A stretch of DNA of 63,879 bases, the filler included, from Reticulomyxa filosa (Eukaryota; Protista; Foraminifera): assembly GCA_000512085.1 (NCBI GenBank). It is 14 parts of 14 records of this genome, joined end to end, with 100 filler letters (N's around TTAATTAATTAA, not from the genome) between each part and the next. Parts side by side here need not be neighbours in the genome. Positions count along the whole stretch, not along the records: positions 49,119 to 57,610 come from ASPP01006143.1; 13 more parts are not named here. One strand, 5' to 3'. Every line of letters starts with the position of its first letter. Position 1 is the stretch's first letter. The translations under genes and the position numbers were made by a program. The notes beneath the pieces are model-generated. The model had not been told where the DNA came from, ran no database searches, and saw nothing but the letters and a program-made list of their open reading frames with translations. This document shows, piece after piece, positions 48,881-57,835 of this stretch.

Positions 48881-49237
48881 ACTTGAATGAAAATGTAAAG
48901 ACAAATTACAATGAACATGAATAAATGTATTTGTGAAAAAGAAAAAAAGGAAAAAGCTAGTATTGAACGTCTGATGCAGTCATGAATGTTGTAAAAATTG
49001 CATTTTTGTTTTGTAAAANNNNNNNNNNNNNNNNNNNNNNNNNNNNNNNNNNNNNNNNNNNNTTAATTAATTAANNNNNNNNNNNNNNNNNNNNNNNNNN
49101 NNNNNNNNNNNNNNNNNNTTTCTTTTTTTTTTTTTTTTTTTTTTTTTATTAAAAAAAAAAAAGCAGTGTTCAAGTAAACTCTCACTGTAATTTCTTTTCT
49201 ACTTCTCGAATGTAGGTTGATAGATGGATATAATCTA

Positions 49238-50005
49238 CTATTCATAAAAATCACTTTCATTATTTTGCTCAATGCTATTTTCTTCATCAACAGCATCTAA
49301 TTCATTCTCAAGATCGACTACCACATCTTGTTTGTCTTGGTATTCGGAAATCAAAGATTGCACATTAGCATGACTTTCCGAGAACTGAAGTTCATCTATG
49401 CCTTCTCTGGTGAAACGATGTAACATCGTTTTTCTTTGGAAAAGTTGTGAAAAGGTAGAGGAAAGAGCTGCAAATGTATTTTTGATGCAAGTGGTATTAC
49501 AAAGCAACGTGCCATTGAGTGGAGTATACGTTGGAGCCAATGGAATAACGGTGATCTTGATAAGGTTTGGAATGAAATTAACAAAGTCTTCGGCCATGTG
49601 ACTTGACATATTGAAGACATCCCAAATATTCATGCTTACGTTTTCTCCACGAATCACAAAAGAATCGGACAAGTATTTGCCATCGCCTGGGACGATATTC
49701 GCGAGCGAGGATACGGACGACCAGAGGTAATCGGTCATCGTTGAGACTGACGTATCTACTTTTTTGCTTTCATCGACTTTGAAAAAAGGATAATGCGACA
49801 TCAACAAAAAATGTAACCGTGGAAAAGGTATCAAGTTCAATCTCATTTTATGTAGATCGTCATTCAATTTACAGGGAATCCTGTAATCACCAGCAATAAC
49901 AATATAAAAATAATTTATTTTTTTTTTTTTTTTTTTTTGGGAAAGAGATACTTTGTTTATTGCATAATGTGCAAGGAGGGGGAGGGGAAAAATAATTGAC
50001 TCTAT

Positions 50006-50045
<40 letters not shown>

Positions 50046-50937
50046 TAAGTGCAAGGAGAAAAGAAAACACCTGCAAACGAACAAACTCTCTTCTTTGGTA
50101 TTATTATTTTGTACCCTCCTTCTTTTCATTGACAAACCTGAAAGATGAAGTAACTCCATTCATGGCCAAAGATGTAATCCAGTTCAAATCTTTGTACGTC
50201 GGATTCGAACTCTTCAATGTCCTCTTGCAAATATTGAAGAGGGATGCGTTGTCGATGGTAAAAGTGGCATGGCTGTGATCAATGAGTTGACTCAAGCCCA
50301 ATATGGCATGGTATGTCTCCACAATTAGCTGACTTGGAAGCACGCTAAACGAAGATGTAACCAAGGTAGGATAGTTGTTTCGGAGGTGCTCCAACAATAA
50401 CGTTCCCAATCCACTGCCGGTACTTCCTCCCAATGAATGCATTACTTGAAATCCTTGTGGTGAGTCACATAACTGTACTTCCCCCCCCTTCCTCTTTTTT
50501 TCTGTCTTCACTCTTTTTTTTTTTTTTTGGCTCTTAACTTCTAATTCTTTTTGAAGGACTTCTGTGTACTCTTCGATAATTTGTGACGACTCGGTCAGAT
50601 AAGATCGTCCGTAACCACCCAAAACAGAAGATGCTCCGGCAACGTAATTATCTGGATTAAACATCTTTCCGATCCGTCCTGCTTTAACTACTTCCAACGG
50701 CCCTGGGTCTGTGTCAAGCATTATTGCTCGAGGGACGTATTTGTTGTCGCTGCTTTCTGCAAAGTACACGCTCATTTTCTCAGTCTGTAGTCGGAGTTTG
50801 TTTTTACTTGTCTCCGGATCCGAAATAAGCGATCCACTTTCGCTAAGCTGATGGTCTTTGCAAATAGATTCCCAAAAAACATTTCCTATTTGATTTCCAC
50901 ATTGGCCAACTTGTAAATGTATTATTTCGCGTACCAT
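49238..50937 (-). CDS. TUBB: Highly divergent beta-tubulin (foraminiferal beta2-related), 458 aa, join(50539..50937,50138..50472,49238..49880)
   Basis: MVREIIHLQVGQCGNQIG, YVPRA, QGFQ..HSLGGSTGSGLG, IDN, NLIPFPRLHF, EYQDKQD and an acidic tail. Two GT-AG introns give an intact 1377-nt CDS. Confidence 0.93.
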
Positions 50938-51343
50938 TCCTTTTTTTTGCTAGGTTTTCTCTTCAAAGACGAACCCAAAAAGGAGGAAATAAACTTAAAC
51001 TATTGATTGTTTGCGGTTCTGTAAATTAATCTCATTGGTAATGCTGTCACACTATAAAGATTAAGTCAGTGATCCTTAATTATTTAAATCCTTTTCATAT
51101 TTTGAAACAGAGCAACTTCGCTTTAAAGTGAACACTTTTTCTTGACAAATGGCTACCTAGTCTGTATTTTTTGGCTGTCCACACAACGAAAAGCTGCACT
51201 TTTTTTTTTTGTAAAAAAAGGTCTTTGATTGACGAGCATGTACCAGTGAGTTGTCAATATAAAATATTGAAAGAAGAAAATAAAAGAGCAAAAAAAAAGG
51301 TCAAGTAAAATCAAGCAAATAAATAAGAAAAAGTACATCAACG
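50938..51343. promoter_or_regulatory. Probable bidirectional promoter between the divergent tubulin and G-alpha
   Basis: 406 bp between the two ATGs of head-to-head genes on one contig; contains TTGACAA and TTGTCAA motifs. Confidence 0.45.
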
Positions 51344-53151
51344 ATGGGCTGCTGTGCAAGTGGTGACGAAAACTCTGAAGTGATAACCTCACGAATGAGA
51401 CAAGAAGGAGCGAGAGATGAAAGAGAGCAAAAACTAGTTTTGTTAGGAACAGGCGAGAGTGGAAAGTCAACAATTTTCAAAAATCTGAAGCGTATCCAAG
51501 GAGGAGAAATGGTAGATCAAAGAACAATCCAAGATATTCGTAACAACATTCGACAAAACATAGTGGAATTTATGGTAAAATTGTTGCTAAAGTCACAAGC
51601 ACTGTACCTTTCCGACAAAGAAAAGCATGCTGATTGTTTGATCAAAGAAGATCAAGACACGCTAAAATACGTACGATTTATGTTGGACCACCAAAAGGCC
51701 CCTTTTGATGACGATTCCAAAATGAAAGACGATATCTTGATAGACCTGGGCGCTGCCGTGGCATTTTTATGGAAGCTGCCTGCCGTCCAAGCGACCTTTG
51801 CTAAGAGATGTGGCCGATTCTCGTTTCCGGACAACTTGGAATTCTTTTTTGACAAAGCATTGGCCGTCATGCAGTCCGACTATAAACCAACCGAAGACGA
51901 CATTATCAAAGTTCGAATCCGTACAACAGGTTACGTGCTACCTTCCTTTCTCCCTTTTTTTTTTTTTTTTGGAAGGGAGGGGGGGGGGGGACATAATTAT
52001 CCCAATACTCTTCATAAAACAATGTTCGCACGTCCAACACTTTGTGACACACCTCTCGCTCCTTTGATCATATGGGCATTTTTTTTTTTAATACGTATTT
52101 TTTTTTTTTTTGGGAGAAAAAAAAAAGGGGTAAAAAAAAAAAATTCAAATATTATTTTTTGAATTTTGTGGTTGAAATGTGAAATAGGTTTCGTGACGTA
52201 CTCGTACACCGAACAAAAGGCCACGTTTTTGATCACAGATGTCGGAGGTCAACGAAGTGAGCGGAAAAAATGGATGTCATATTTCGACAACGTTGCAGGG
52301 GTAATATTTGTAACGGCGTTGAACCACTACAACGCAGTATTGTTTGAAGACGAAGAAAAAAATGCAATGCATGAAGCCGTGAAACTATTCGAGCAATTCG
52401 CCAACATTCACGCGTTTGAAAAAGCAGGTGTGCAAATTTTTGATTTTTTTTTAATCTTTTTTTTTTTTGTGCCTGTTGCATTTCGTACTTTTAACTTTTT
52501 TTTTTTTTTTTGCATATTCTTTCTCTTTTTTTTTTTTTCCTCTCCCTCTTTTGATCAATTTAAAAATGTGACTTGATTATTTTATTTTGAAACAGAAATG
52601 ATACTGTTTCTCAACAAGAATGATTTGTTCATGCAACAACTGAAAATTGTACCATTAAATGTTTGCTTCGACAAGGACGCTGGATGGTTAGTATTTTTGC
52701 TTGTTGTGTTTGTATTTGTCTGTTCGATATACGTATTCTATGTATACACACCCGCATATTTGTTAAATGTACAATATGCAAAAACACGTATTTTTTTTTT
52801 TTTTTTTTTTTTGCATATAATAACAACACTACCTTTTGCACACACTTTGCTTAAACTCTTGTCCTCTTACGATAAATAATGATTGGACACAGGAAAGACG
52901 AGGAATGGGATGGAAAGAATTACACTCCCAAAGAAGACCCAAATGAAGATGCGCTCCACTTTGAAGAGTGCTACCAAGACGCCATTAAATTCATTAAGCA
53001 ACTGTTTATAAATAGAAATAGTGTGGACGATCGCAGTGTTACTTGCCACGTCACCTGCGCAACGGATAAGGGCAATGTCAGAGCTGTATTTTGGGATGTA
53101 CAGAAGAGAATTATTGAGATCAATTTAAAACATGGAGGATTTATCGGTTAA
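51344..53151 (+). CDS. Heterotrimeric G-protein alpha subunit, 391 aa, join(51344..51929,52188..52427,52596..52686,52893..53151)
   Basis: MGCC acylation motif; G1 GTGESGKST, G2 RIRTTG, G3 DVGGQRSERKKW, G4 FLNKND, G5 TCATD; three in-phase GT-AG introns. Confidence 0.97.
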
Positions 53152-53895
53152 AAAAAATGAAAGAAGAATATTGAAGGATATAATTAACTTTAAAAAACAA
53201 AAACAAAAACAAACAAATTTAAATATGAAATTCAAAAACAAAACAAAACAAAATGAACAAAGGTCAAAAAAGAAAAAAAATTTTTCTCCCAATAATTCGA
53301 TTCTTTCAAAATTTATTTTTCTTTTTTTTATACTTGGAGCATGTTTTGAAGTTTTCTTTTTTGTGTGCTTTTTGCTTTGTTTTTTGTTTTGCAATATATC
53401 CTCGTTTTTGTTATCTTTGGATTTTTGTTTTGTAACTAGAAGTTGTCAATGAAACTTTTTCCATTCCAATGGCTGCTCATTTACCTAACTTGTTTTGTTA
53501 TCGTTTTTTTAACCATTTTTTCCTTTTCTTTTTTATTTTGTTTTGTTTGTTTTTGTCTGGCATTTCTTCTTCTTGATCCTTTTGGATCAATCAAGTGTGG
53601 ATAAACTTAATGACGTTTTTGCCATTGAAACAGTTCTCTTCCTTCCAAACCTTTCCTAACTACAAGCAACCGTACATATTAAATATATTTCAAAAAAAAG
53701 ATCTCTTTGAAATTTAAAATAACAAATTATAAAGGCACAAAGACAATGATGATTCTAATAATTGATAGCCAAGAAATAAAAGGCAAGCGACTAAAAAAAT
53801 ATAATTACATTATAACAAATTATAAACTTCTACAAACGTGTTTGATCGGTCCATAACGTTTGACAAAAAAACGTTGGAAGGGAGACAACACGTTG

Positions 53896-54660
53896 ATGCA
53901 TTTTCCGATGACTTATTTCAATGCCAACCTAATTTGGCGTTTTTGCAAATGGCATAATAAATGTCGAAATACGAAATCAATATCTAGTTTGGTGGGTTCC
54001 ATTCCGTCATTGTTTGGGAAAAATGTATACGTCTCGCACGTGTTGTACACGTCCGAGGCAACGAACAGCAACAAGCCTTCCTCTAGTTGGAAGGACAGTA
54101 AAACATTGAATTATTTTGCACTGCTGGACATACCAGAAAAATTCAACATTGACAAACAACAATTGTATAAAAATTTTCAGTCAAAAATGAGGGAGAATCA
54201 CCCAGACAAATACTCGACTCCAAGTCACACAAAACAACAATACAACGATGCAGTATTTATATCTTCGCAATTGAATCGAGCAAAACAAGTGTTGGAGTCA
54301 CCTCTCTGGCGAGCACAACATTTGGTGATGATCAGGAAGCATCAACAATCATCGTCAGAACGGCAGAGTCACGATGAGGATATCTTAACTGAAGAAACCA
54401 AAATCACCGATCAAAACTTTTTATTTGAAATAATGGATACGAGATTACAAGTGGAAGATTATGGGAGCAAAAATGACGTTGCTAAACTCGATCAATTGCT
54501 TCAGGAAAATAGTCAACGTATGGAACATATTATTTCATTAATTCAAAAAGAATTTGACCAAACCAAACCTCACCTCTTCACCATCAAAGAATTGTTAGCC
54601 AAATTAACTTATTTTGATCGCATTGAAGCCGAAATTAAGGAACAATTACCAGCACGATAA
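53896..54660 (+). CDS. HSCB: Mitochondrial Fe-S cluster co-chaperone HscB/Jac1
   Basis: NYFALL...F.ID...HPDKY J-domain, LN.A..VL..PL.RA..L, FLFEIMD.R and KLTYF C-terminal domain; basic presequence-like N-terminus. Confidence 0.9.
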   Translation: MHFPMTYFNANLIWRFCKWHNKCRNTKSISSLVGSIPSLFGKNVYVSHVLYTSEATNSNKPSSSWKDSKTLNYFALLDIPEKFNIDKQQLYKNFQSKMRENHPDKYSTPSHTKQQYNDAVFISSQLNRAKQVLESPLWRAQHLVMIRKHQQSSSERQSHDEDILTEETKITDQNFLFEIMDTRLQVEDYGSKNDVAKLDQLLQENSQRMEHIISLIQKEFDQTKPHLFTIKELLAKLTYFDRIEAEIKEQLPAR

Positions 54661-55327
54661 CAAAAAAAAGTTCAAAAAAAAAAAAGGGGGGACGGATGAA
54701 AAAGGGAGAGATGTTTGTATCAAAGAGTTGGTTCAGTACAATATCAATTGAGTACAATATATAGACATTTTGATTTTGATTGTTTTTTCCTTGTCCTTTC
54801 TTATTGCTTTTTCGTGGCTTTTTTTCACTGCACAAAAAGCGATATTATTACCTTGCCTTCGCTCGTCCTTTTTACAAGTATTCGGTCGTATCTCATTTTT
54901 TTTAGTCATATCTTAAATGCTCGTTTCCCTCCTATATATTAAAGCTCAAAAAAAAGGAAATGTTTACATCCGATCTTTGGTTTTACTTACTATCTCTAAC
55001 GCATTTCTCTTGTTTTACAACTCGGAACATTTTTTGTCTTTCAAGTTTTAGAGTTTGTTTTTTGTCTTAAAAATTGTCAATATGAAAACAATTATTGCTG
55101 TTTTTTTGACAATTTCCAAAGAAATTTCTGAATATTTATGCCGATTCTTTTGGCGTACTATTTGTAGAAAACTAAATAAAAACTACAATTTATATTATTG
55201 GCTTTCCAATAGTTGAGGTTTCAAGAGAAAAAAGAAAGAATTGTCGAAGGAACTCTGCAATACAATCAACAATCCTTTTAAATAATCAGAAAATTATATT
55301 GGTGAAAAATGTTTTGAAAATTGCCTT

Positions 55328-55555
55328 CTATCTTATGTCGTGTGTTTTTTGTTTGAACACTTTTTGGAATGCTTGTTTTTCCATTTCTTCAATTTTTTGC
55401 AGCGTCATCGATTTCAAAGGAAGCATTTTGGGTTTGCACAGGACTGGTTGCAGATCATCGCTTTCCGTAAAAACAATTCCAGAACGCGGAAAAACTTCAC
55501 CAATCTGCTGCAATAGATTGCTCTCATTTTTAGTTAATAAACTACCGTTTGACAT
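55328..55555 (-). CDS. BBIP1: BBSome-interacting protein 1 (BBIP10/BBS18)
   Basis: EVFPRSGIVFTE....VLCKPKMLPLKSMTLQKIEEM matches the BBIP1 signature EVLPK.G.LF.E...VLCKPKLLPLKS.TLEKLE.M. Confidence 0.92.
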   Translation of the reverse strand: MSNGSLLTKNESNLLQQIGEVFPRSGIVFTESDDLQPVLCKPKMLPLKSMTLQKIEEMEKQAFQKVFKQKTHDIR

Positions 55556-57198
55556 TATTTGCTTGTAAAGTTAATTTTAATTCACACCGCTTAAGTAAAT
55601 TATGCTTAACAGAATAAATGACGTCAAACGATTCTTAATTTTTTTCAGATTCATACTGATTAAGCAAAATAGAAAATCAAAAATATTAACACAATTCTTG
55701 TAGCTGTTAGATGATATACTCTTTCGGAAATAAACAAGTGTAAATATTAATTTTTTTCTAAAACTGTCCTAAAAACGAAAGAATTAAAAAGTGGCCGAAA
55801 CGAAAAAAATGACAACACAATCTTAAGCAACAACATAGACCAATTTTAAATATCTTATTTTGATTATTGAGTTAAGTGAGTAGTAAGAGATTTGATCCTA
55901 CAACAAGTAACGGTTTTTGTACTGGATCAAAAATAGTTGTTTCTGTCAATCAGCAAAGTTTGGTTCCATGTTCCCCCTAATTTTCTATTTGCGAATGCAT
56001 GACCACTTCCATAAACAGTTTCTTATTACATTTAGCAATTTTTATTCCTAGAGAATTGAACTAACATGTATTGTTACAACTCAATTTCTTAAAAAATTTT
56101 TTAACAAAACAAAAAAAGATAGTTTAAGGGGAAAAAAATGAGTTGAAAATGTATCTTCGGATTCTTTTCGTCGCCAAATCAGCGCCTTTGTTTGAAAATT
56201 TGGATTATGTGATTTGTTTTGTGTCTTCAGTAGAAATAGCAATAGGATGTCAATAAATCTAAAAAAAGTAATGTCTCGCAGATTTTGTTTGTTACAATAC
56301 CATACAGTTTTACTTGTGTTTCAAACTACGTTACCTTGGACGTCTTTTTTTCAAGAAAATGTTGTAAATCCTCTTAACTTGTGCAAAAATAGTTTCAAAT
56401 GCATCAATAATCCAAGATATTTCTCCAACTTGTTGCAAGAATAGCGTAGTTTGGAACAAAACGAAACAAAAGGGGAACTGTTAAAAAAGGTTTGGTTTAA
56501 AAGAATCGCAGCCAAAACAAGGCAAAATGAAAATTATTTGATCACCAAGTGAACTTTGGAGATCAATTGGAATTGTACATAACTAGAGAAAGGTAGCTCA
56601 CTGTCCGCATGTGGAGATATTCAAGAATACTTATGTATCACACCAACAAAAAAGATTTAATTTTATTCCATTTTAAGATTTTTCGGCAACGTGTTATTAA
56701 TTTGATTGGTTGTTTTGTTCAAACAGTTTTTTTCTGATACCATATAAAGCAAAAACAAAAAATATGCAAAGCAAATTTCTATGATACGGAGCCAAAATCT
56801 GCTTTTGCGCGTTTCATTTCCAATAATCATCAGCTGCTGCTTTCTTCAGCATGATTTAGTTTTTTGATCAGCAATAAGAAAAAAATGGCTGCAAGATTGA
56901 AATGCAAGAGGGAAAAAAAAAAGCAAAAACAAAAAAATTACTCTTTGAAATACGAACACTTCTTTGGTAGAAAGTAAAGCCCGCAGACGTTGTGTCCCTT
57001 TCTTTTACCTACGGCACATTTTTTTTGTGTGCTTCTTTGTTTGTTGTTTGAGTCAAGACCGTCTTTTCACCTCTTTGAACACTCGGAAAGAAATCATCTT
57101 CCTATTGTAATGGCATGTCTTTGTAGGGGGTGTGTCGTTTCAAGTGTTACACAGTGCAAAAAAATTTTTTTTTTGGGTAAAACAAACAGGATCGTGCA

Positions 57199-57435
57199 AT
57201 GAACGTTGACGAGACAAGAAAAAAGAGACAATTGCACTTTTTCGACGAAGATGAGACGTTCTCCAAACTCGAGCCAACATTGCCAGTATTCCCTGATTTT
57301 TTATCCTCTCCATTGCATTGCGTGAAACTAGCGTCCAACGTATTAACAGCCGATACCAACAGTCACAGCACTACCACACCACCCACGCCATCGCACGAGT
57401 CGTCCACTTCCAAAGACCACATTTACAACAACTTT
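57199..57435 (+). CDS. Probable first exon of an uncharacterised protein (3'-truncated)
   Basis: ATG-initiated, GC-richer ORF ending at a GTTAAG donor followed by poly(T)/poly(A) intron-like sequence. Confidence 0.45.
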
Positions 57436-57835
57436 GTTAAGACCATTTTTTTTTTTTTTTTGTTTAACTAAAAAAAAAAAAAAAAAAAGAATTGCACCTT
57501 TCACATTTCGACGAACGCCAATTTTTTTTTTTTTTATCCCAACTTTTTTTTTTTAAACCCTACTTTTCCCTTTTGCTACTCTGATCAAACGGACACCTCT
57601 TACCCTTTTCNNNNNNNNNNNNNNNNNNNNNNNNNNNNNNNNNNNNNNNNNNNNTTAATTAATTAANNNNNNNNNNNNNNNNNNNNNNNNNNNNNNNNNN
57701 NNNNNNNNNNAATCATTTGAAAGAATTGTGATTTCATCCAACAAAAAAAAAAAATTATTAAAAAACAAATTTCATATTTAAAAACTACAAGATTTGTAGA
57801 TATTAAAAAAAAAAAAAATTAGATCTAAATGTTTA

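Follow-up and report, generated by a model that had tools for sequence, protein, structure and literature searches.

A fast-evolving beta2-tubulin paralogue of Reticulomyxa filosa with altered residues of the GTP-activation switch

Introduction

Beta-tubulin is among the most conserved of eukaryotic proteins, and its loops T3, T4 and T5 are essentially invariant. Lineage-specific, fast-evolving paralogues serving specialised arrays do exist, such as the BLT genes of Tetrahymena and the mitotic tubulins of Naegleria, and these keep the GTP-binding motifs. To our knowledge, no other cells remodel microtubules as fast as Foraminifera, which also convert them into helical filaments, and neofunctionalisation has already been suspected for foram beta2 and alpha2. 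Here, we analyse a beta-tubulin gene of the foraminifer Reticulomyxa filosa, located on the minus strand at 50937..49238 of a window of 63,879 nucleotides that joins 14 parts of 14 records of the genome assembly GCA_000512085.1; the part in question (49119..57610) derives from ASPP01006143.1.

Retarian beta2-tubulins comprise multiple paralogues varying in functional areas, and 25 alpha2 copies have been reported in R. filosa (PMC5455982). In the helical filaments of forams, longitudinal contacts are considered lost and lateral ones retained (PMC4990898). The switch that links GTP to elongation has been described at the level of single residues: GTP presses on the amide of Asn99 in T3, the contact between Asp177 and Tyr222 is freed, T5 moves "out" and Asp177 meets the incoming alpha subunit, and a pair of substitutions in T5 (T175R,V179R) blocks longitudinal assembly (review PMC7491153). 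Known about the present locus are its GenBank entry under a generic name and its parent family, the retarian beta2-tubulins. New are the corrected gene model, the selective retention of an extreme copy, and the loss of the T3/T5 switch with the base pocket kept.

With high confidence, we regard the gene as a protein-coding, lineage-specific R. filosa beta2 paralogue that evolved ~10-20x faster than its canonical counterpart while purifying selection maintained an intact, folded tubulin. That it is, moreover, a maintained paralogue whose GTP switch has been lost is the explanation we favour overall, with somewhat more reserve.

Loss of switch residues in a partly retained nucleotide pocket

What sets this beta-tubulin apart? 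Among 105 full-length beta-tubulins, 36 of the 120 alignment columns that are at least 98% conserved differ in the gene product, and none of the others departs at more than 8; a difference of this size lies well outside chance and normal variation. Across canonical beta2 (18 sequences), conservation is 100% in T3 and T4 and 99% in T5; identity of the gene product to the beta2 consensus is 0.15 in T3, 0.86 in T4 (G142S) and 0.30 in T5, where four residues are missing. None of the exchangeable-site loops T2, T3 and T5 has its canonical sequence (DLEPG; GAGNNW; SPKVSD..VEPYN). An initial annotation, made from the sequence alone, had listed DTDPG for DLEPG, GGSTGSG for GGGTGSG, IDNASL, KTMLHRF and altered T3 and T5 loops as changed motifs, and GQCGNQIG, KLN.DL.K and NLIPFPRLHF among the largely retained ones; we find all the changes as listed, with GQCGNQIG, the KLN..DL.K stretch and IPFPRLHF retained. 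Its deletion in T5 is also there, as a four-residue gap with the Asp absent (Gln instead), but whether SPKV or KVSD is scored as lost depends on the alignment. GGSTGSG occurs once among the ~280 tubulins fetched, and two other foram paralogues have Ala at position 142.

Judged by residue identity, the nucleotide pocket is split: contacts to the guanine base, the ribose and the alpha/beta phosphates persist, whereas the gamma-phosphate sensor has been replaced together with its output. T1 retains Q11, C12, N14, Q15 and I16, and T4 retains six of its seven residues (G140, G141, T143, G144, S145 and G146, with G142S the exception); also kept are the nucleotide-contact residues S138, P171, S176, E181, Y183, N204, Y222, L225 and N226. 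The replacements comprise E69D in T2, A97V, G98L, N99G, N100G and W101Y in T3, the deletion of residues 172-175 with D177Q and N184H in and near T5, and E205A; V179 is conservatively exchanged for Ile. T3 (amino acids (aa) 103-117 of the product) is changed at 11 of its 13 aligned positions, compared with 24-39% at other near-invariant sites, and thus seems fully unconstrained. Mapped onto the GTP-switch relay, both ends (Asn99 in T3, Asp177 in T5) and position 175 are lost, with Tyr222 and the base pocket kept. The claim of the initial annotation that the GTP site is rewritten is thereby tied to residues of a published activation switch (PMC7491153).

The engineered yeast beta-tubulin T175R,V179R (PMC7491153) offers a parallel in that T5 is affected in both proteins; here, residues 172-175 are deleted, D177 is Gln, Asn99 and Asn100 are Gly, and Tyr222 is kept. 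Unlike the yeast mutant, the R. filosa protein is natural and carries ~220 further substitutions, and a block of assembly would be predicted from its sequence.

A singleton within the Reticulomyxa beta2 clade

By domain content, the product is a tubulin. Exons 1 and 2 match the tubulin GTPase domain (PF00091) over adjoining profile positions (1-104 and 106-190), and exon 3 matches the tubulin C-terminal domain (PF03953), which follows it (E values in Table 1). The glycine-rich tubulin signature, [SAG]-G-G-T-G-[SA]-G in PROSITE, is not matched, the third Gly (G142) being Ser in GGSTGSG. The protein is closer to beta-tubulin than to other tubulin classes: all best matches in protein collections and the PDB are beta chains, and H8, where alpha-tubulin has a catalytic Glu, carries Lys at position 252, as do all beta sequences compared. 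An MVREI start, the H1-S2 insertion, K245 in T7 and EYQDKQD..VVD mark it as beta2, the alignment confirming the foram beta2-like hallmarks (MVREI, H1-S2 insertion, EYQDKQD) that had been read from the sequence.

Foram-type beta2-tubulins known from metatranscriptomes of soil and litter match best, at 49-51% identity, versus ~42% for canonical beta-tubulins. The branch separating beta2 from canonical beta has a support of 100, and the gene product falls within beta2 and groups there with P0001 and P0002 (Shimodaira-Hasegawa-like approximate likelihood ratio test, SH-aLRT, 98), or with P0302 (ETO33694.1) added (100). As the 90% cluster of P0002 contains the R. filosa beta2 fragment ETO26688.1, the clade of P0001, P0002 and P0302 represents Reticulomyxa's own beta2 lineage. 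With 2.1-2.6 substitutions per site, the terminal branch is ~10 times as long as the others (median 0.21). A long-branch caveat attaches to the placement, which is the same with and without P0302. No orthologue or closer relative of either half of the protein was found among 15 billion proteins searched. For want of a closer relative in these collections, we consider the gene a lineage-specific singleton and not a foram-wide class. The initial annotation's "further-derived class" is replaced accordingly, and its description of an intact beta2-derived tubulin distinct from the described canonical isoform stands.

Canonical retarian beta2 (P0001; the P0002 cluster including ETO26688.1) shares with the gene product its clade, the four beta2 hallmarks and the acidic tail. 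In contrast to these copies, the gene product is only 50-51% identical to them, has T3, T4 and T5 rewritten and a branch ~10-20x longer, and lacks strong codon bias. The moderately divergent paralogue P0302 has both introns at the same positions and phases and is itself altered at the nucleotide site (Q11E, Q15L, N99S, D177N), yet GGGTGSG, DLEPG and KAFLHWY are conserved in it and its T5 has full length; its identity is 65% to canonical beta2 and only 46% to the gene product, and its GC content at third codon positions (GC3) is 0.19. A divergent ancestor in common with P0302 is conceivable; the two have just 14 derived residues in common, and the tree gives a polytomy. Because both introns match those of this sister paralogue, the gene arose by duplication at the DNA level; a retroposed origin is rejected on the same ground. 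The P0302 gene lies at ASPP01003195.1 680-2176, and its strong bias towards A or T at third codon positions suggests high expression despite the altered nucleotide-site residues.

Outside this clade, the transcriptome-derived beta2 paralogue P0124 of the foram Nonionella stella (EukProt EP01083 P165119) likewise has a degenerate exchangeable site (E-site), with Q11A, Q15A, DSDPN, N99H and GGATGSG. Unlike our gene product, it belongs to a rotaliid-type clade and has T5 and IDNEAL intact; the two are 42% identical in the C-terminal domain. Since the clades differ, orthology is rejected and the erosion of the P0124 E-site was an independent event. P0124 also has a large H1-S2 insertion, and E-site erosion seems recurrent in foram beta2 families. 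A rotaliid-type beta2 subgroup among foram transcriptome and ENA proteins (P0328, P0329, P0355, P0308) features a conserved N-terminal extension of ~50-60 aa before MREI, and some of its members have altered signatures (GGATGSA, GGGAGSG, GGGTGGG).

A corrected gene model

In GenBank, the gene is entered as R. filosa "beta-tubulin" ETO29268.1 (X6NTJ0; hereafter P0121), a protein of 514 aa that matched exon 3 at 100% in an exhaustive protein search; a search of the literature for this accession found no mention of it. We find this model to be mis-spliced: intron 1 is retained (aa 134-155) and a shorter intron 2 is used (extra aa 268-301). Removal of the two extra segments (22 + 34 residues), which are absent from all tubulins, yields the 458-aa model. 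The initial annotation was thus right about a complete product of 458 aa, but this is spliced from three exons and is not a single open frame.

Three observations support the shorter model. Aligned to P0121, solved beta-tubulins in the PDB show gaps exactly facing both extra segments (aa 134-155; aa 268-300). In the AlphaFold2 (AF2) model of P0121, the predicted local distance difference test (pLDDT) score falls below 50 over aa 266-319, while the remainder folds as beta-tubulin (predicted template modelling score, pTM, 0.81). And the paralogue P0302 has GT..AG introns of 68 and ~61 nucleotides (nt) at the same two positions, the 68-nt one of which cannot be read through. The AF2 model has a tubulin fold, with beta-tubulin chains as top Foldseek matches (TM 0.90, target-normalised), although this is not independent evidence, as a tubulin alignment went into the model. 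Fold and PDB comparisons used the 514-aa P0121, and exons were searched separately; the joined exons entered only the alignments, trees and simulations. Whether the gene proves silent or active, the GenBank model needs correction.

Divergence under selective constraint

Is the gene a relic or a maintained copy? It bears no disabling lesion: all 458 codons are open, both introns are bounded by GT..AG, and ATG and TAG lie at homologous positions. We simulated neutral change from the canonical coding sequence (CDS) under an AT-biased Hasegawa-Kishino-Yano (HKY) model that ignores indels, which renders the test conservative. The frame remained open in 0.3% of the runs at 17% residue change and in 0/2000 at 30% or 49%. 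Forward simulation from the gene's own CDS gave open-frame probabilities of 0.47, 0.06 and 0.003 for 0.010, 0.036 and 0.08 substitutions per site, respectively. The 192 replacements, counted where P0001 and P0002 agree, have a mean BLOSUM62 score of +0.18, compared with -0.43 to -0.60 (sd 0.11-0.20) under neutrality, and the fraction of changed positions climbs with site variability, from 24% in invariant columns through 39%, 47% and 67% to 78% in variable ones.

Pairwise ratios of nonsynonymous to synonymous substitution rates (dN/dS) against the nearest relatives had saturated or undefined dS and were replaced by codon-position branches, besides the simulations. On a fixed eight-taxon tree, the branch of the gene measures 0.517 at codon positions 1+2 versus 4.24 at position 3 (saturated), a ratio of ~0.12; the corresponding values are 0.034 for canonical copies and 0.20 for P0302, with a neutral expectation of ~1. 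GC3 is 0.41, compared with 0.37-0.51 in the neighbouring G-alpha, HscB and BBIP10 genes, 0.22-0.31 in non-coding sequence and 0.11-0.28 in canonical beta2 and P0302. In its codon usage the gene resembles an ordinary, probably weakly expressed one. On the combined strength of the open frame, the conservative replacements, the conservation gradient, the codon-position ratio and the codon usage, a long-dead pseudogene is rejected: as the sequence comparisons have it, nearly all divergence, motif changes included, accrued while an intact protein was maintained. A young pseudogene in neutral evolution, which the initial annotation had named as grounds for abandoning its proposal, is rendered unlikely for the bulk of the divergence by the simulations and codon-position branches.

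Distribution of changes over the protein surfaces

Positions at least 90% conserved within beta2 were grouped by structural element, the boundaries following published descriptions of beta-tubulin structures in sequential numbering, not coordinates. By this grouping, the T2/T3/T5/H11-H12 loops at the plus end and E-site are changed at 28 of 46 positions (0.61), followed by H11 and H12 (13/26; 0.50), the intradimer elements T7/H8/H10 with the following loop (13/32; 0.41), the strands (15/40; 0.38), the lateral elements (9/30; 0.30) and the block of T1/H1, T4/H4 and T6-H7 (14/48; 0.29). The plus-end and E-site loops are 1.7-fold enriched in changes over all else (28/46 vs 64/176, p 0.004), and set against the intradimer face alone the difference is 61% vs 41% (p 0.11). 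Raw identities are low in the M loop (0.36), H3 (0.33) and H10 (0.13, nearly all replaced), and range from 0.62 to 0.86 in the T7/H8-S7 stretch.

In these counts, the plus-end enrichment is genuine but modest, and no surface is untouched. In the proposal that the plus-end face was rewritten and the intradimer face kept, the contrast between the two is weak. An even spread of substitutions over all surfaces, which the initial annotation would have taken as a refutation, applies in part, in that the strands, H11/H12 and H10 are also heavily changed.

A possible role without GTP licensing

What could such a protein do? It probably keeps guanine nucleotide as a structural cofactor, and would have lost the in/out switch from T3 to T5 by which GTP readies the plus-end face of beta to receive the next alpha. 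If GTP no longer licenses elongation, the protein is unlikely to be a bulk microtubule subunit. More likely, it would be present at low abundance, altering or ending longitudinal growth as a non-canonical beta subunit, or would assemble with a co-diverged alpha2 partner; low abundance is proposed because codon usage is that of an average gene and not of tubulin genes. Any specific modulator or terminator mechanism we advance only tentatively. In its most explicit version, which we hold to be doubtful, a switch-less beta-tubulin would pair with alpha and hold nucleotide, while its rebuilt T3/T5/H11-H12 face would refuse the GTP-dependent next dimer, making it a sub-stoichiometric chain terminator or a promoter of polymers with lateral contacts only, such as helical filaments. 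A link to these filaments would, by way of speculation, fit the relatively better-kept lateral positions. If true, the protein would provide a genetically encoded handle on the exceptionally fast microtubule remodelling of Reticulomyxa.

Regardless of mechanism, an intact copy with dismantled loops represents a natural experiment on a tubulin without the GTP-assembly switch. It is the most extreme foram beta2 member seen so far and, along with independent E-site-degenerate foram paralogues, suggests a recurrent route. Should the protein be made, its biology would be striking; the evidence comes from a single gene of a single genome.

Weighing the alternatives

Several points weigh against a maintained, switch-less beta2-tubulin. 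The G142S exchange breaks the tubulin signature, and nucleotide binding is a prediction from sequence. No known orthologue allows a direct dN/dS, and synonymous sites are saturated; a recent neutral phase or loss of function of up to ~0.04 substitutions per site is compatible with the open frame; and the protein collections searched contain no transcript-derived copy of the correctly spliced protein. Structural boundaries follow published descriptions and not coordinates, and the changes extend beyond one face: with 41% of the beta2-conserved intradimer positions and 38% of those in strands changed, pairing with alpha itself becomes uncertain.

A rival explanation is a recently silenced or never-expressed relic, a duplicate on its way to a pseudogene whose motif changes reflect long relaxed constraint and no new role. 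No branch in the family is longer than that of this gene, its product departs at 24-39% of otherwise invariant positions, and it no longer shows the strong codon bias of tubulin genes; it is also a singleton, with neither an orthologue nor a transcript-derived copy in the collections searched. Moreover, R. filosa has large tubulin families: its paralogues diverge to different degrees, P0302 for example with a branch of 1.0, and 25 alpha2 copies are reported (PMC5455982). What renders the relic unlikely in our eyes is that 458 codons are open despite 0.52 changes per site at positions 1+2, which confines a neutral phase to ~0.04 at most, and that splice boundaries, start and stop are all in place. 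Conservative replacements graded by site conservation, the 0.12 ratio and a GC3 shifted to the level of ordinary genes, not of non-coding sequence, argue in the same direction. Were the gene silent after all, it would document birth-and-death turnover in an expanded tubulin family.

If the copy is maintained, it might still polymerise, as a specialised isotype paired with a divergent alpha2 whose T7/H8 face has co-evolved, in a distinct polymer or life stage (gametes, spindle, helical-filament stores). Retaria carry paired alpha2 and beta2 innovations, alpha2 being amplified in R. filosa as noted (PMC5455982); change at beta2-conserved positions is lowest in the lateral elements (30%) and in the T1/T4/H7 block (29%), and foram helical filaments are considered to retain lateral contacts while longitudinal ones are lost (PMC4990898). 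Other forams also express divergent beta2 paralogues in which T1, T3 and T4 are altered (P0124 of Nonionella stella, P0308), and the presence of a BBSome gene on this contig may indicate a ciliated stage yet to be described. However, the co-evolved alpha partner is hypothetical, the Nonionella paralogue is of independent origin and hence an analogy only, and raw identities are low in the M loop, H3 and H10; we rate this explanation as rather improbable. Finally, the tubulin fold could serve outside any polymer, in a non-cytoskeletal or regulatory role such as sequestering alpha-tubulin or tubulin cofactors, or the autoregulation of tubulin levels. Such a role would fit the changes in both longitudinal faces, in H10 and in the motor-binding H11/H12 (50% of conserved positions), alongside a fold core and a nucleotide base pocket that are kept. 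Yet the acidic tail, the beta2-type end of H12 and the T7/H8-S7 stretch are kept as well, as expected if alpha or lattice partners are still met, and we deem a role of this kind very improbable.

Gene structure and neighbouring genes

Two long minus-strand open reading frames (ORFs) between 50937 and 49238, where the initial annotation had placed the gene, resolve on reading of the sequence into a beta-tubulin gene of three exons (1377 nt, 458 codons plus TAG; Table 1). The intergenic region upstream is presumed to hold the promoter and 5′ untranslated region of the tubulin gene. Long homopolymer runs (A16, G8, A22, 3′-end poly-A/T) and TA repeats fill 49881-50137, 50473-50538 and 49119-49160, and the exons avoid them.

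Table 1. Elements of the beta-tubulin gene and neighbouring features, in window coordinates
Feature	Position	Strand	Description
Exon 1	50539..50937	-	aa 1-133 by translation; Pfam Tubulin (PF00091) E 4.5e-23; = P0121 aa 1-133; start codon, S1, H1-S2 loop, H3
T1 GQCGNQIG	50884-50907	-	in exon 1
T2 DTDPG	50701-50715	-	in exon 1
T3	50587-50631	-	in exon 1; aa 103-117
Intron 1	50473..50538	-	66 nt, GT..AG, phase 0; in frame, stop-free, rich in A/G homopolymers
Exon 2	50138..50472	-	aa 134-244 + 2 nt by translation; Pfam Tubulin (PF00091) E 1.4e-22; S4, H4, S5, H5
T4 GGSTGSG	50410-50430	-	in exon 2
T5, shortened	50308-50337	-	in exon 2
T6 IDNASL	50239-50256	-	in exon 2
H7 YKDLN	50182-50196	-	in exon 2; kept base contacts
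Intron 2	49881..50137	-	257 nt, GT..AG, phase 2; TA repeats and A22 run
Exon 3	49238..49880	-	aa 245-458; Pfam Tubulin_C (PF03953) E 6.8e-16; 100% match to P0121 aa 302-514; M loop, H9-H12
T7/H8	49808-49873	-	in exon 3
H11-H12 loop RKTMLHRF	49412-49435	-	in exon 3
EYQDKQD..VVD	49307-49345	-	in exon 3; beta2-type, followed by acidic tail
TAG stop	49238-49240	-	in exon 3
Intergenic region	50938..51343	.	406 bp, GC 0.31; shared head-to-head with G-alpha gene
G-alpha gene	51344-53151	+	four exons, ~51344-51940, 52184-52420, 52598-52690, 52900-53151
HscB-like ORF	53860-54660	+	single exon
BBIP10-like ORF	55328-55555	-	75 aa

The gene facing the tubulin gene encodes a heterotrimeric G-protein alpha subunit with an acylation-type N-terminal start (MGCxxS). 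Further along, an ORF encoding a weak DnaJ domain together with an HSCB C-terminal domain (E 2.7e-13) is likely the mitochondrial Fe-S cluster co-chaperone HscB. Another short ORF matches BBIP10, a subunit of the BBSome of cilia (Pfam E 5e-21). We know of no flagellate stage described for R. filosa, and this ORF may point to a ciliated stage so far hidden, or to a use outside cilia.

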